A stretch of 62,882 nucleotides of DNA, the filler included, from Lenisia limosa (lineage: Eukaryota; Protista; Breviatea), in NCBI GenBank assembly GCA_001655205.1. It is 15 parts of 15 records of this genome, joined end to end, with 100 filler letters (N's around TTAATTAATTAA, not from the genome) between each part and the next. Parts side by side here need not be neighbours in the genome. Positions count along the whole stretch, not along the records: positions 47,880 to 53,387 come from LPNZ01003365.1; 14 more parts are not named here. The stretch is one strand, 5' to 3'. A model generated the notes under the pieces. The model saw nothing but the letters and a program-made list of their open reading frames with translations. It did no database searches and was not told where the DNA came from. This document shows, in pieces, positions 47,727-53,601 of this stretch; position 1 is the stretch's first letter, and the number at the start of each line of letters is the position of its first letter. The position numbers were made by a program, and so were the translations under genes.

Positions 47727-48277
47727 CTGGGTTGTGAGGTGCAAGACGGCACTGTCTGGTCGAGATGCGAGTTAATATANNNNNNNNNNNNNNNNNNNNN
47801 NNNNNNNNNNNNNNNNNNNNNNNTTAATTAATTAANNNNNNNNNNNNNNNNNNNNNNNNNNNNNNNNNNNNNNNNNNNNTGTGGACCAGGGGGCAAAACT
47901 GGGAGTTTTAAGGCAAATGATTGGGTGAATTACTATGCTGGAGTGCAGAAAGCTGTGTGCACAGAGTTGCAATGTTTTGGATGTACTTGAGAGATATACA
48001 AAGTAACAGGTAAAACGAAGGAAATTTCGATGAAGTTCAAGTTACAGATATCTGGCTGGAGATATCAAAGCTGGGATTTTTTTCNNNNNNNNNNNNNNNN
48101 NNNNNNNNNNNNNNNNNNNNNNNNNNNNNNNNNNNNNNNNNNNNNNNNNNNNNNNNNNNNNNNNNNNAGGAGAAAAGAGGTTTGAATGGATACTTTCAAT
48201 ATGTTAATCGATGATGACAGATTGCTTTGTTAGTGATGGAGTTTTTGTGTCCTAAGTATCTTGGTTTTCACAAGCCA

Positions 48278-48482
48278 GGACTACCAGCTAGACGATCAAG
48301 GTTTCCCAGTCCACACAGGAGCTGACGATATCATGTTCTGGATTCGAGATACTTATGTGGTAGGAGAGGAGAAAGAGAGTGGGAGGTCCTTCCTGAAGCA
48401 ATTCTTCGCTCTTTATTTTATAGAACCACCCGCTTGCAACAGCAAGAACAAGGTACAGAAGAGCTCTCTCTTCAAGATCTAA
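48278..48482 (+). CDS. Hypothetical protein, possible last exons
   Basis: QDYQLDDQGFPVHTGADDIMFWIRDTYV..QFFALYFIEPPACNSK; not recognised. Confidence 0.25.
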
Positions 48483-48686
48483 CTAATTGATGCATATTAT
48501 AACCAGAATTCAACAGAGCCTGCGAAAAATTTATGATGTTGATAGACAGAGGCCTTATTCACGAAAAGAAAGAAGAGAAAACCTGAAAGAGGTCTTTAAA
48601 AAACCCACCCAATAAACAAACAACCACTTGGACTCCTTGAATGCAGTCACAGAGTAACTTTATTAACCAGACAATGTGGAAATGAC

Positions 48687-49210
48687 TTAGAGAGTCTTGG
48701 CCTTGGGGGCAGTTCCTAAACAAGTCAAACCCGGGCAGAATGCTTAAAAATACGACGGTTTTCACTGTTAGTGAGTGTAAACGGTCACAACTAGCCATGA
48801 GCTTACCCTCACGGAAGCCGTTCTTGAAGCGACGAGCAACGGCACCGAGGTGACGCATGCGGCCAGTACCGGTGGTACGACGACGGATGGACTTCTCAGA
48901 CCAGTTGACTAAGGAGGTAAGATGAAAAAAAATATCGTTTTAATGAAAAAAAACTCCATATAACCTCAGCTCAAGCACTGAACGAAGTTTAAAGCTAATT
49001 AAAACTGTTCCCAAACATACAAGTCCGCTTGCGAGCATGGGGGTATCCGCAAGAAGCGCAAGTGCTCTTCTGGATGTGGTATGAGCGACGTCCGCAGCGA
49101 CGGCACACAGTGTGTGTCTTGTTGTGACGCTTACCGAAAGACTGGGTACCCTTGGTCTAAAGAGAAAAGGAAGGTTAGAAAGCAAAAAAAAGAAATGAGA
49201 TCATTACCAT
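48687..49210 (-). CDS. RPL37: 60S ribosomal protein L37 (eL37), complete, 4 exons
   Basis: [71 protein letters not shown]. Confidence 0.97.
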
Positions 49211-49475
49211 ATTGTCTGTTGGGGGCAGGAAAGGAAAGAATCACAAAAAAAAATCCAAAGAAAAAGAAAATAGTCCAGTTCAGTTCAGTTCAAAAAATTA
49301 CGAATTTAGCGTCTTTTAAGTTTAATTTTTTTTAATTTCTCCACCCTTTTCGGATAAATTGGTATGCCTTGATGTAGTGGATTTATTTTCATCGCATTAA
49401 ATATTTTCTCAGCAATGAGATTGCTTTGATACCATAAGCGATTTTCCTACTTTTTTTTACTTTTCAGCTACTAAG
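49211..49475. promoter_or_regulatory. Putative bidirectional promoter, RPL37 / ML-domain gene
   Basis: Divergent ATGs 265 bp apart, AT-rich. Confidence 0.55.
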
Positions 49476-50771
49476 ATGCGTTTCTCCCTCAGTTTCCTCC
49501 TACTTGTGTGCATGTTGGCATTTGCCCACAGTTTGACTTGGTCAGTTTGCGATACCGGTGCTGAGGTTGGTTCACTAATTTCCTGTTATTTCTTATCATC
49601 AGTACACTCTCCGAATCAACAAGGTTGATCTTAACCCTGGAGAACCCAAGCGCGGCCAAGACGTTTCAGTTGACGTCGAAGGATACCTCTGTGGGTCACC
49701 TCAAGCTCTTTCTTAGAGCTGCTAAGGGATAATCAGTGTTTTTAGAACTAATTACCGGAAGTATTAATGCATATCAGCCAAGAACGTCACCGGCGGGTCT
49801 CTCCACGCTGAAATCAAGGTCGATCATATCAAGGTTGCCAGCAAGACTGTCGACACTTGTGAAGCCAGTATGTTGGGAAACATAAGGGGTACCAGGCACA
49901 AGTGTTGTTGTTGGAGTTGATTCTTTACCTTTACAGCCAAAATGTGCCCCTTCGTTTCCGGACCTCTTGTGTTCAACGACATTGTCAACATCCCCCATGC
50001 TGCCCCCAAGGTCTGGGACTGAATTTTCGGGACTGCTTTGAATTTTTCTCTGAGAACTGTTGTGTTATTTTGAATATGGAGAATTGTCTGGTAGACTGCG
50101 AAAGATATTTATCATCGTCACTTTAATTGGTTTTGATGTTCCCCTGTTACCACCTCCACAAACTGCCCTTTACTCATGTGTTCTGAACATCACTGAGATC
50201 ACTGAGATCATAGAACTGGTTAAAGTTGCCAAGAAAGTTGATCATGGAATATGGGCGGGGGGGGGGTAGCTCCACCTTCCTTCTATTCTCATTGATTTTG
50301 GATCTTTTTTGTTTCATAAATTTTCCAATTTAACACAATTCCCTTGGTTTGGGTTTTTTTTTAATTTTCTACCAATTTTACTCCCCCGGGGGGCTTTATT
50401 AATTTCAATTATAATGAAAAGTAACTACGAGATATAGTAATGAAGAATAAAAAGCAAGGTTGTATTTGGCAGCCGTTCACACCATAACGCTTATAAGAGA
50501 GATTGAATTAGAGTATACTATTAATCATTTGCCTTGCAACTCTGCACAATGAGCTAATGCATGTCATATTAATACCCAGCACTAATATCATTTCTACTTT
50601 TACCGACGTCCATATGGGAACATTGGAGATCATATTTATCATTAATAAAAACACAAGATCATCATGTTTCAATGACTGATATTTCAGGGTCGCTATGACG
50701 CCAAGATCAACGTTGTCGACCAAGACGGCACTACTGTTATCTGTGTCAAGGCCTCTCTCAAGCTCCATTAG
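49476..50771 (+). CDS. Secreted ML-domain lipid-binding protein (NPC2 / PG-PI transfer protein-like), complete, 5 exons
   Basis: Signal peptide MRFSLSFLLLVCMLAFAHS, WSVCD, VDLNPGEPKRGQDVSV, DTCE, CPFVSG, IPHAAPKGRY, VICV; TAG at 50769-50771. Confidence 0.9.
50449..50555 (-). mobile_element. Family B copy, reverse orientation
   Basis: AAAAAGCAAGGTTGTATTTGGCAGCCGTTCACACCATAACGCTTATAAGAGA..AATCATTTGCCTTGCAACTCTGCAC. Confidence 0.75.
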
Positions 50772-51096
50772 ACTGCACATTGCTCGTGGTGGCATTAAGT
50801 TGCTGCTAGTTTGATATGATATAATATACTCATTCTGAAAACTCCAAACCTTTACATCTAATATGATTTCATAAATATAAACTTGAAGACTTTTCTATTT
50901 AGTATTAATGTACCATATCAAGTTCACGGGTTTCAGATACAACACCAGGTTTCGTAACTTTACAATGCTCATCTCCAATGGAAATGATGAATAGAAACGA
51001 AAGCACATGAAACAGGACCAAAAAAGAGGAAACATATCTTCATCTAACAAGATCATACATAAGCAGGGGAAACACAAACAAATACAAAAAAGAAAC

Positions 51097-53348
51097 TTAA
51101 TGAGCCAAATGGAGCTCATGAACAGGGTTGTTGACCAAGTCTTCGGTGCCGAAGTAGCGATGGAGAGCGGAAGTGACAACGTCATTCTCGAAGGAGTGGT
51201 GGACCTTGTTGGAGGCATCGGAGCGACGAAGAGGGTTGGCACGCTTGGTGTTGATGTTGTAGCGAGAAGACTGGAGACGAAGAGCCATTCCGCCGCCGCC
51301 GACACAGCCGTGGGGGCAGGCCATAGCTTCGATCGCGTCAATGTCGGTGATAGAGCCGTCAGTAATGCCGGCGTATAGGGTGGTAGCGTCACGGGCTCCG
51401 TGGACAACAGCAACACGGCAGGGGGTTTCGCGGCCTGGGGGGTCAGGTTTTGTTTGGTGTAGCAGTGAAATAAACGTTACGTAGAATCTATCACAAAGAT
51501 GTTAAAAACAATAAATAAAACCCACATACCTGGGGGGCCGATGAGGAAAGTAGCGCGCTTGATGGCAGTTGAGTGGCTGCGGATAATGTCGATAGCTTCG
51601 GCGTTGAGGTCCATGTTGAGGGTGCCACCGACGTGCTCCATGCCGGCGCGGGCGCAAAGAATGTAGTGGGCACCACGAAGAGCGGCTTCCATTACGCCAC
51701 CGGTGGTACCGAAAATGGTGGAGGAACCGGAAGATTCGCCGAGGTAAGCGTCGAACTTGTTGAGACCCTTAGCGACATCATCTTCAGTGACGGGATGGGT
51801 GTACTTAAAGTCCTCAGCGCGACGGATCATGTAAGCAAGCTCTCGGACGGTGATGGAGGCTTCCATGTCAACACCAGCCTTGACGACGTTATCGCGCTCA
51901 ATCTCGGCCTTCTTAGCGGTACAGGGCATGCAGCCGAAAATGGCGTAGTCTTCGGGCTTGTAGCCTTGGGCCTTCATGTACTTGTGGACCATGGTGGCGG
52001 CCATGGCAAGAGGGGATTGGCAGGTGGAAAGATTCTTCTCGAGAGTGGGGAACTTCTTCTGGATGAGCGAGTAGTTGCCGGGGCAGCAGGAGGTAACGAG
52101 GGGAAGCTTGAGCTCTTCTTCGGGGTCGGTCATACGAGCAAGAAGCTCCTTGGACTCCTCAATGATGGTGGCATCAGCGCCAGCTTGCACGTCAAAGACC
52201 TTGTCAAAGCCGAGGCGGCGGACACCACGGACCATAAGCTCGGTAAGCTCGTTGGGGTCGGCACGGGAAAGAGAAGCTCCGAAGGCCTCAGCAAGACCGA
52301 CGCGGGTAGCGGGGGCAGTGAGAGCAATGCAGATCTTGCCAGCGTCCTTGGCGGCTTGGAATTTGGAGCGGTCCTCGCGAGGGTGGATAGCACGGACTGG
52401 GCAGCTGAAGGGTCAAGAAAATGGAAATATGGACAAAAAAAAACAATATGAAACAGAAACAAAGATTTGAGAGAGAAAGTCTCATCCCCATACCTGACAG
52501 CACACTGGCCGCAAGAGATGCAGTTGGTGTCCTTGAGGAACATAGCGCCATTGGTGAGGGTGGGATGGTCACCAGGGTATTCCTGGGCAAGGATGTCGCA
52601 GGGGCAGGCTTCTGGAGGGGTCAAGATGATGTCAATAACACAAATTCATGAATGATCTTGCTCCAAATAATAGGAATTCAGCAGCCCCACAAACCGACGC
52701 AAGAACCGCATCCCATGCAGGAATCGAGGTTGATACGGAGGGGGCCAGTGGACTCGAAACGGCGGGAGCGGAACTCCTATGAGGGTAAGAGAAAAAAAAA
52801 TCAATATGGGGTACAAAGCGGGTGATTGAAATATTCGTGAGCGATATGACAAGAAAAGCCCCTCATACGGTACGGGCTTCAGGGTTGTCATCGGAGGTAA
52901 TGGTTTCAGACTCAGCGATCTCGTGCTCCTTTCCAGCGTTGGCAATCTCCTTGTTGTAGTCGGTGAGAAGCTGGCGGTAGTGGGGGCTGTTGATGCCCTT
53001 GAACTTGTCCTTAAGGTACTTGTTGATGTTGATACCGGCAACGCGTCCCGCGCCGCAGGCACGGATAACGGTGGCAGCACCGGTGGCAATATCTCCGCCG
53101 GCGTAGACGCCTTCAATGTTGGTTGCTTGACGATCGTCGACTTCGATAAGGCCGCGGTTGGTCTTGAGCTCAGGCCAGCGAGAAGTAAGGACAGGGTTGG
53201 GGCCTTGGCCGATAGCGATGATGAGAGTGTCGCACTTGATGAACTCGAAAGCGGGGGGCTCAATAGCGGTGATGTGTCCGGTGGCAGAGACTTGCATCTT
53301 CTGGACGCGGATACCCTTCATCTTGGTGCCGTCACAAGAAGCAACAAC
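51097..53348 (-). CDS. hydA: GltD/NfnB-like FAD/NAD(P)H oxidoreductase fused to 2x[4Fe-4S] and [FeFe]-hydrogenase H-cluster domains, 5' truncated
   Basis: In-phase exons: CDTLIIAIGQGPN..GVYAGGDIATGAATVIRACGAG; CMGCGSCVEACP; CISCGQCAVSCP; P1 TSCCPG; P2 MPCTAKKAE; P3 EAMACPHGCVGGGG; C-terminal SFEN..VHELHLAH-TAA. Confidence 0.95.
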
Positions 53349-53601
53349 CTAGGGGGTAAAAATGGAAATATATATGGGGGGGGGGGGNNNNNNNNNNNNN
53401 NNNNNNNNNNNNNNNNNNNNNNNNNNNNNNNTTAATTAATTAANNNNNNNNNNNNNNNNNNNNNNNNNNNNNNNNNNNNNNNNNNNNCAATACAGCCCTT
53501 CAGCCACCCCTCTTCTCCTTAATACCCCCATGATGACCACTAAGTCGTCCATTCCTCCGTTCAAGTATGTTTTTAAGCCAGGAAAGAATATGCTTATCAG
53601 A

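Follow-up and report, generated by a model that had tools for sequence, protein, structure and literature searches.

A Lenisia limosa gene that probably joins an Nfn-type flavoprotein to an [FeFe]-hydrogenase in one chain

A nuclear, intron-rich gene of the breviate Lenisia limosa probably encodes a single protein chain in which an Nfn-type flavoprotein is fused to an [FeFe]-hydrogenase, and the motifs of its exons suggest that this chain is an NAD(P)H-linked hydrogenase. From its N terminus to its C terminus, the predicted protein would comprise an NfnA-like part, a complete NfnB-like part, a linker of ~45 residues, the F-domain of HydA (with two [4Fe-4S] motifs), and the H-cluster domain. 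A fragment of the gene, with five exons on the minus strand (53348..51097), comes from one piece of the window (positions 47880-53387, from LPNZ01003365.1). By the window we mean the whole stretch of DNA that we analyzed: 62,882 nucleotides (nt), filler included, made of 15 joined parts of the assembly GCA_001655205.1.

Anaerobic eukaryotes face a thermodynamic puzzle in getting rid of NAD(P)H in the form of H2, and the usual answers are confurcating HydA-NuoE/F complexes or CysJ fusions. A single chain that joins the bifurcating flavoprotein Nfn to an H-cluster would, if true, be a third solution. The hydrogenase itself is probably already known, and what we add is detail and a proposal for its mechanism. 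The main gain is a corrected and extended gene model, with NfnA and NfnB rather than GltD alone.

Gene model and transcripts

The stretch is present in two public runs from one 2016 study (a DNA-like run and a poly(A) metatranscriptome), and we mapped their contigs to the window. A poly(A) RNA contig of 1246 nt spans 51256..52768 and omits exactly 95, 89, and 83 nt, which are the introns between exons E5 and E4, E4 and E3, and E3 and E2. A preliminary description of this DNA had taken the gene to be eukaryotic, and its spliceosomal introns, which are removed in poly(A) RNA, bear this out. Bacterial contamination is ruled out because the introns are absent from the poly(A) RNA.

All four introns in the window run from GT to AG, with GTATG or GTTTG donors and a pyrimidine-rich tract before CAG or TAG. 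Their GC content is 0.34-0.41, versus 0.56-0.62 in the exons. One reading frame is kept across every exon junction in the window, and both ferredoxin-type motifs are whole only after splicing (CMGCGSCV joins EACP across E2 and E3, and CISCGQCAV joins SCP across E3 and E4).

An exact look-up of the 152-amino-acid open reading frame (ORF) in E1 led to NODE_1803 of ENA ERZ3820729, a contig of 9522 nt that we call L001. (An exact look-up of the 252-amino-acid ORF in E4 gave no match.) L001 is an independent assembly. It is colinear with the window piece (the position in L001 is 55316 minus the position in the window), and it carries the same joint between flavoprotein and hydrogenase. It also extends the gene upstream by 1928 nt, with four further in-phase GT-AG exons. 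The missing 5' end, whose recovery the preliminary description had suggested, has thus been found in part: the whole of NfnB is now in view, but the first ~180 residues, and any targeting peptide, are still off the contig. A word search with U1 for the rest of the 5' end found bacterial NfnA fragments only, at up to 68% identity. In total, 1100 codons are visible, there are at least 8 introns, and the whole protein is predicted to have ~1280 residues. The exons and the introns near the window are:

Exon U1, L001:3-332: C-terminal [2Fe-2S] domain of NfnA
Exon U2, L001:450-533: N-terminus of NfnB
Exon U3, L001:688-1303: Fer4_20 domain and the GxGxxG motif for FAD
Exon U4, L001:1442-1821: NADPH site (GAGNVA, YRR)
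Intron U4/E1 (3' end), 53349..53387, minus strand: ends in ...CCCCCTAG; the piece breaks off within the intron, whose full extent is L001:1822-1967 (146 nt)
Exon E1, 52869..53348, minus strand: 160 codons, for the C-terminal ~115 residues of the NfnB-like flavoprotein (FAD/NADPH) and then the linker of ~45 residues
Intron E1/E2, 52777..52868, minus strand: predicted, 92 nt, GTATGA..CATAG; lies between the flavoprotein and the ferredoxin-like parts
Exon E2, 52695..52776, minus strand: rest of the linker, then Cys 1 to 3 of [4Fe-4S] motif 1 (CMGCGSCV); matches Fer4 and Fer4_2
Intron E2/E3, 52612..52694, minus strand: 83 nt; skipped by the RNA contig; CT..AC on the plus strand
Exon E3, 52494..52611, minus strand: finishes motif 1 (EACP) and has Cys 1 to 3 of motif 2 (CISCGQCAV); both of its splices are in RNA
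Intron E3/E4, 52405..52493, minus strand: 89 nt; skipped by the RNA contig
Exon E4, 51530..52404, minus strand: finishes motif 2 (SCP) and has the bulk of the H-cluster domain, with P1 and P2
Intron E4/E5, 51435..51529, minus strand: 95 nt; skipped by the RNA contig
Exon E5, 51097..51434, minus strand: P3 motif, small-subunit-like C-terminal tail, and stop codon (51099-51097)

Another RNA contig, of 1486 nt, matches 53126-53348 and then runs on with letters that code for DLKLLRKPVE. Because it leaves the window at 53348 for an upstream exon, this position is a real exon edge. The letters for DLKLLRKPVE are the end of U4 (L001:1792-1821), so the splice of U4 to E1 is confirmed. Furthermore, this contig has 1263 nt upstream of E1. 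U4, U3, and U2 total just 1080 nt, so the contig should reach beyond the point where NfnB begins and enter U1 or the intron next to it. Its length favors one transcript for NfnA and NfnB. We infer the splice of U1 to U2; the GT-AG intron of 117 nt between these exons keeps the phase, and U2 also contains an in-frame Met.

We infer the join of E1 to E2 from phase, from intron style, and from the lack of an alternative start. The donor of E1 (GTATGAG) is the nearest one, it is in phase, and it is like the other seven donors. The frame of E2 is closed directly upstream by the TAG of its acceptor, and the sole Met in E2 is inside the iron-sulfur motif. E2 therefore cannot begin a protein and must be preceded by another exon. 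In the linker exon, no Met follows the Nfn domain in frame.

We also noticed an RNA contig of 91 nt, with a depth of 183, that maps to 51221-51285 in two overlapping pieces. It is rich in GCC and GGC and codes for GGGG; it is probably an assembly artifact of this low-complexity word.

The flavoprotein and hydrogenase modules

Exons were searched one by one against profiles and structures. The flavoprotein exons all fall in order on NF009414/PRK12778 (single-chain NfnAB), at positions 181-272 (U1), 297-324 (U2, a weak match with E = 0.038), 327-505 (U3), 510-633 (U4), and 641-751 of 752 (E1), so the flavoprotein module appears to be a fused NfnA-NfnB. NfnB-type sequences outscore GltD proper as matches to these exons. 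The preliminary description had labeled the module as GltD/NfnB-type and had suggested a search for an NfnA partner. The NfnB half of that label stands, and L001 shows NfnB in full, including its two [4Fe-4S] motifs and its sites for FAD and NADPH; but the module is not GltD alone. As for the partner, NfnA appears to be encoded in frame upstream, within this gene, rather than by a gene of its own, and its [2Fe-2S] end is seen.

Most of NfnB is encoded by U3, U4, and E1. U3 matches residues 35-214 of NfnB from T. maritima (E = 2e-49), U4 matches residues 221-341 (E = 2e-42), and E1 matches residues 354-461 (4ylf_B, E = 7.9e-19). E1 also matches Pyr_redox_2 from Pfam (44.5 bits, the last part of the domain) and the C-terminal end of models for NADPH-dependent glutamate synthase and Nfn. 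The motifs RCLQCPDPQCQKGCPV, GRVCPQENQC...C, GTGPAG, GAGNVA, and YRR are kept in U3 and U4. As expected for an NfnB with two [4Fe-4S] clusters, U3 matches PF14691 (Fer4_20, E = 1.9e-31). Of the eight Cys in NfnB from T. maritima, seven are present here; Thr takes the place of the other one, as it does in NfnI-L from P. furiosus. The FAD and NADPH sites are represented by VVGTGPAG, GGDIATGAATVI, VVGAGNVACDA, and VYRRNRAAMPA, which align to 4ylf_B; of these, GGDIATGAATVI is the C-terminal GGD motif of the FAD site and is in E1 (53064-53099). U1 matches residues 189-272 of the small subunit of NfnI from P. furiosus (5jca_S, E = 2e-30), with DGTGMCGACRV...C intact. U1 is ~65% identical to NfnA/NfnS and keeps all of the ligands of the [2Fe-2S] site (Asp and three Cys, DGTGMCGACRVTVAGTTKFACVDGPEF; PF10418, E = 3.7e-14).

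The predicted protein shares with NfnAB the order of NfnA and NfnB, the short joint between them, a [2Fe-2S] site made of an Asp and three Cys, a Fer4_20 domain for two [4Fe-4S] clusters, the motifs for FAD and for NADPH, and the C-terminal GGD motif; its exons are colinear with model positions 181-751. Unlike NfnAB, whose low-potential electron goes to free ferredoxin, this protein has a linker, an F-domain, and an H-cluster domain on its C-terminus. And unlike known Nfn, it is encoded by a eukaryotic gene with introns.

The hydrogenase module begins in E2, which matches the Fer4 profile, and E3 has a weak but colinear match to positions 41-59 of FeFe_hydrog_A. E4 alone matches Fe_hyd_lg_C (PF02906) with 158 bits (the cut-off is 22.1; E = 3.9e-46), FeFe_hydrog_A (TIGR02512, E = 1.1e-68), and HydA1 from the PDB (7q4v_A, E = 3e-44). 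E5 matches positions 204-245 of Fe_hyd_lg_C and positions 465-555 of NF040763 (the small-subunit-like tail). Residues 5-107 of the 111 in E5 align with residues 533-631 of 9rkm_A from the PDB, and the stop codon is 4 residues past the end of the alignment to the C-termini of HydA.

The two motifs of the F-domain, CMGCGSCVEACP and CISCGQCAVSCP, have the form CxxCxxCxxxCP. They are each made whole by a splice that is confirmed by RNA, and they are directly before the H-domain. The motifs of group A hydrogenases, whose usual forms are TSCCPxW (P1), MPCxxKxxE (P2), and ExMxCxxGCxxGGGQP (P3), are also present: P1 is TSCCPGN (52074-52094), P2 is MPCTAKKAE (51903-51929), and P3 is EAMACPHGCVGGGGM (MACPHGCVGGGGM is at 51286-51324). 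Judging by these motifs, the predicted protein is a group A [FeFe]-hydrogenase as well as a member of the Nfn family. We also considered a Nar1/NARF-like protein, which is ruled out by the F-domain and by the presence of all of the H-cluster motifs. Every motif that the preliminary description had quoted was found, and its claim that an NfnB/GltD-type FAD/NADPH module, two [4Fe-4S] motifs, and a full H-cluster domain are joined in one phase agrees with the profile matches and with the exon phases.

Proposed mechanism and its alternatives

In NfnAB, NADPH reduces the bifurcating FAD of NfnB (PMC6405883; structures 4YLF/4YRY, 5JCA). One electron goes uphill, via the two [4Fe-4S] clusters of NfnB, to ferredoxin, and the other goes downhill, via the [2Fe-2S] cluster and the FAD of NfnA, to NAD+ (PMC6405883). 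In the Lenisia protein, we propose that NADPH would pass a hydride to the NfnB flavin, and that electrons would move from the [4Fe-4S] pair of NfnB to the tethered clusters of the F-domain and on to the H-cluster, where protons would be reduced to H2. The tethered hydrogenase would take the place of NfnAB's free ferredoxin. Because the NfnA branch is retained, we favor, though tentatively, a bifurcating version of this proposal: 2 NADPH + NAD+ + H+ -> 2 NADP+ + NADH + H2. The downhill electron from NADPH to NAD+ would pay for the uphill electron to H+.

If the enzyme is bifurcating, then the eukaryotic cytosol could vent NADPH as H2 at an H2 pressure where plain transfer from NADPH to H2 is impossible. 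The fusion would be a natural test object for whether Nfn's low-potential branch is enough to reduce protons in the absence of ferredoxin, for the stoichiometry of NAD+, and for the host's need for hydrogen-scavenging partners. We also speculate, with rather more doubt, that the complete bifurcating module of NfnA and NfnB is hard-wired to the H-cluster as a ferredoxin-independent hydrogenase, and that retention of the 92-nt intron could switch the product. With the intron kept, the product would be a plain Nfn transhydrogenase; with the intron removed, it would be the hydrogenase fusion.

A fused protein might instead work without bifurcation, as a GltD-like conduit (NADPH + H+ -> NADP+ + H2). 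Both electrons from NADPH would pass singly through the [4Fe-4S] pair, and the reaction would run only at very low H2, maintained by a partner that consumes hydrogen. NfnA would serve as a second entry site for nucleotides or be a vestige. GltD-type modules are established non-bifurcating conduits from NADPH to iron-sulfur clusters (review PMC8097209), and a simple conduit fits the reported hydrogen sensitivity of Lenisia (PMC5437931). Furthermore, bifurcation needs the FAD and NAD(H) sites of NfnA, which lie in the unseen N-terminus: L001 begins inside NfnA, at model position 181. This counts against our favored version. However, a vestige seems inconsistent with how well the visible part of NfnA is conserved (all of the [2Fe-2S] ligands and ~65% identity, as described above), and a GltD-like conduit fits poorly with the higher scores of NfnB-type sequences. 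Overall, we consider the simple conduit to be unlikely, if not very much so.

Other observations weigh against the fusion itself or against its activity as a hydrogenase. No RNA contig from the poly(A) run covers 52769-53125, so the splice of E1 to E2 that makes the fusion is unseen in RNA, and the depths of the RNA contigs differ across the joint (44 versus 8.5). The difference in depth may reflect the 3' bias of a poly(A) library, or it may reflect two transcripts. An in-frame stop comes directly after the E1 donor: if the 92-nt intron were retained, the frame would end after one codon (V, then stop), which would leave a stand-alone Nfn. So there might be two products and no fusion, with an Nfn-like protein that ends just after 52869 and a hydrogenase from a separate or alternatively started transcript. 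This seems improbable given that E2 lacks a usable start and needs an upstream exon, that the E1 donor is the nearest one, in phase, and of the usual kind, and that the linker exon is Met-less in frame.

The joint is also close to a fork in the assembly. The contig graph of the DNA run forks at 52957-53003, with breaks in the Logan contigs at 52974-53003. One contig, of 395 nt, has 47 nt in common with the gene (52957-53003, with 1 mismatch) and then diverges; the depths of the contigs are 36, 35, and 20. In the frame of the gene, the 395-nt contig reads ...KYLKDKFKGINSPHYR and then TSQHKSEPG, versus QLLTDYNK in the gene. It is a second locus or an allele with the same C-terminal helix of NfnB, and perhaps an unfused paralogue of Nfn. 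Also, 65 nt that lie 4.7 kb 3' of the stop codon (L001:8975-9039) are 86% identical to part of E1 (L001:2012-2076). They code for QTMQVSAIGHITAVKPPAFEY, versus QKMQVSATGHITAIEPPAFEF in E1, and are flanked by proline-rich low-complexity sequence; this looks like a fragment of a duplicated copy. A paralogue or allele therefore exists, and there may have been a mis-join at 52957-53003, with the Nfn and hydrogenase parts coming from different genes. We consider such a chimera to be very improbable: the window piece and L001 give the same path, and the contig on the hydrogenase side (up to 53003) has a Met-less open frame that starts at the NfnB C-terminal helix KYLKDKFKG. Because this helix is already on the hydrogenase-side contig, the true upstream partner would also be NfnB-like, and a mis-join would only swap which copy of Nfn is attached.

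As to the activity of the hydrogenase, the Asn in P1, which the preliminary description had singled out, is indeed unusual: of 149 relatives, 145 have Trp after TSCCPx and none has Asn there. P3 ends in GGGGM instead of the usual GGGQP. In a quick tree of 140 representatives, E4 is on a long branch (0.99, versus a median of 0.37) and has no supported sister, so no origin for the H-domain can be named. Judging by the Asn and the long branch, catalysis by the H-domain could be altered. The domain might even be inactive on H2 and be a regulatory or electron-transfer relic on a working Nfn transhydrogenase. But none of the four H-cluster Cys is lost, nor is the proton-transfer Cys of P1 (also as previously described). 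P2 retains its Met and Lys, and the Glu/Arg/Ser residues around the proton path (EE..E..R and SP) are retained as well. Also, GGM (as GGGM) occurs in 9 other relatives, and the gene is transcribed. We doubt strongly that the H-domain is a relic. Finally, none of our scans for relatives (described below) found another protein with the Nfn-HydA architecture, so our preferred reading, of a fused NAD(P)H-linked hydrogenase, gets no support from conservation.

Related architectures and neighboring genes

The abstract of Hamann et al. 2016 (Nature 534:254) is said to announce "a so far unknown type of NAD(P)H-accepting hydrogenase." The preliminary description had mentioned that a similar NAD(P)H-dependent fusion was reported from L. 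limosa. In later papers that cite Hamann et al. 2016, the [FeFe]-hydrogenase of L. limosa is indeed described as NAD(P)H-dependent and "specialized" (e.g., PMC5437931). Text searches of the literature found no description of the domain make-up of the L. limosa hydrogenase. The gene that we describe is probably this hydrogenase from 2016. Pointing the same way are the one 2016 study with a poly(A) metatranscriptome in which the window DNA occurs, the density of introns, and the fragmentary assembly. Carpediemonas frisia, on which the same laboratory worked at that date, seems an unlikely source given the intron density.

In its hydrogenase module, the protein is like group A HydA from other protists, with an M2-type core of two [4Fe-4S] clusters and an H-domain with a small-subunit-like tail; a difference is that it is without 2Fe-2S or NuoG-like N-terminal domains. 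The HydA-CysJ and HydA-flavodoxin fusions of protists (Trichomonas, Pygsuia, Stygiella, Paratrimastix, and Barthelona) also link NAD(P)H to H2 within a single chain (PMC4989108). Unlike these, the Lenisia protein has its flavoprotein at the N-terminus rather than at the C-terminus, and the flavoprotein is of the Nfn/GltD type rather than the CysJ type; the identity is 44-47%. It has no C-terminal flavodoxin module (FAD_binding_1/NAD_binding_1), and its relatives P0002 and P0003 do have such domains.

Two bacterial systems are also similar. In group A2 of the [FeFe]-hydrogenases, as defined by HydDB, a separate GltD gene is immediately downstream of hydA (PMC5037454). Like this glutamate synthase-linked group, the Lenisia protein pairs a group A hydrogenase with an NAD(P)H flavoprotein of the GltD family (PMC5037454), but here the flavoprotein lies upstream, shares the hydrogenase's reading frame, and has an NfnA part as well. 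In transhydrogenases of the Bfu type (Stn and NfnABC; PDB 9N5U), the subunit StnC/NsoC/NfnA has a GltD/NfnB-like N-terminus and a C-terminal iron-sulfur domain that is related to HydA and NuoG (PMC7483475). That domain has no H-cluster, and it works with NuoE/NuoF-like subunits, where bifurcation occurs. By contrast, the C-terminal domain here is predicted to be a true hydrogenase with an H-cluster domain, and the partner module is NfnA; 9n5u_A matches the flavoprotein exons only.

A search with E4 against 1.84 billion representatives found 2043 hydrogenases with up to 50% identity. The best named relatives, at 44-47% identity, are from anaerobic protists (Barthelona, Ergobibamus, Paratrimastix, and Cantina). 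An Nfn/GltD domain is absent from the best 150 of the 2043 (0 matches by blastp of E1), and the long proteins among these 150 are fusions with CysJ, NuoF, formate dehydrogenase, epimerase, or WD40 domains. A word search with E4, against proteins of up to 509 amino acids, reached at most 47% identity, with no Nfn/GltD domain among the 120 matches listed. A scan of prokaryotic genomes found 3 bacterial loci with relatives and no Nfn nearby, and in a scan of JGI metagenomes neither a close relative nor an Nfn beside a hydrogenase turned up. A feature search of the ESM Atlas returned ordinary hydrogenase clusters. Across these scans, the Nfn-HydA fusion is rare.

Three of the proteins from these searches have unusual predicted domain sets. 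P0001, a representative predicted as one protein of 4122 amino acids, combines seven each of H-cluster domains and small-subunit tails with three flavodoxin domains and a single FAD_binding_1 domain. Gene prediction probably merged a series of tandem HydA-CysJ or HydA-flavodoxin genes here, but the protein would be striking if real. P0035 (1158 amino acids) and P0080 (1135 amino acids) are predicted to have an N-terminal WD40 propeller, then HydA with 2Fe-2S and H-domains, and then a C-terminal flavodoxin. These are either neighboring eukaryotic genes that were merged or an undescribed fusion.

Returning to the window piece, the stop codon of the hydrogenase is followed, after ~320 nt, by an unrelated gene on the opposite strand (~49476-50772, plus strand). 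Read by eye, it encodes a small secreted ML-domain protein (NPC2/MD-2-like, lipid-binding) with the signal peptide MRFSLSFLLLVCMLAFAHS. The ML-domain gene has at least 4 introns, one of which is unusually long (~680 nt, ~50010-50690). Beyond it, a gene for ribosomal protein L37 (~48790-49210, minus strand; also read by eye) has an intron directly after its ATG and another one later. Because the piece has a run of Ns at 48086-48167, its source contig is a scaffold. The same place in L001 is 21 nt shorter (offset of 1928 versus 1907).

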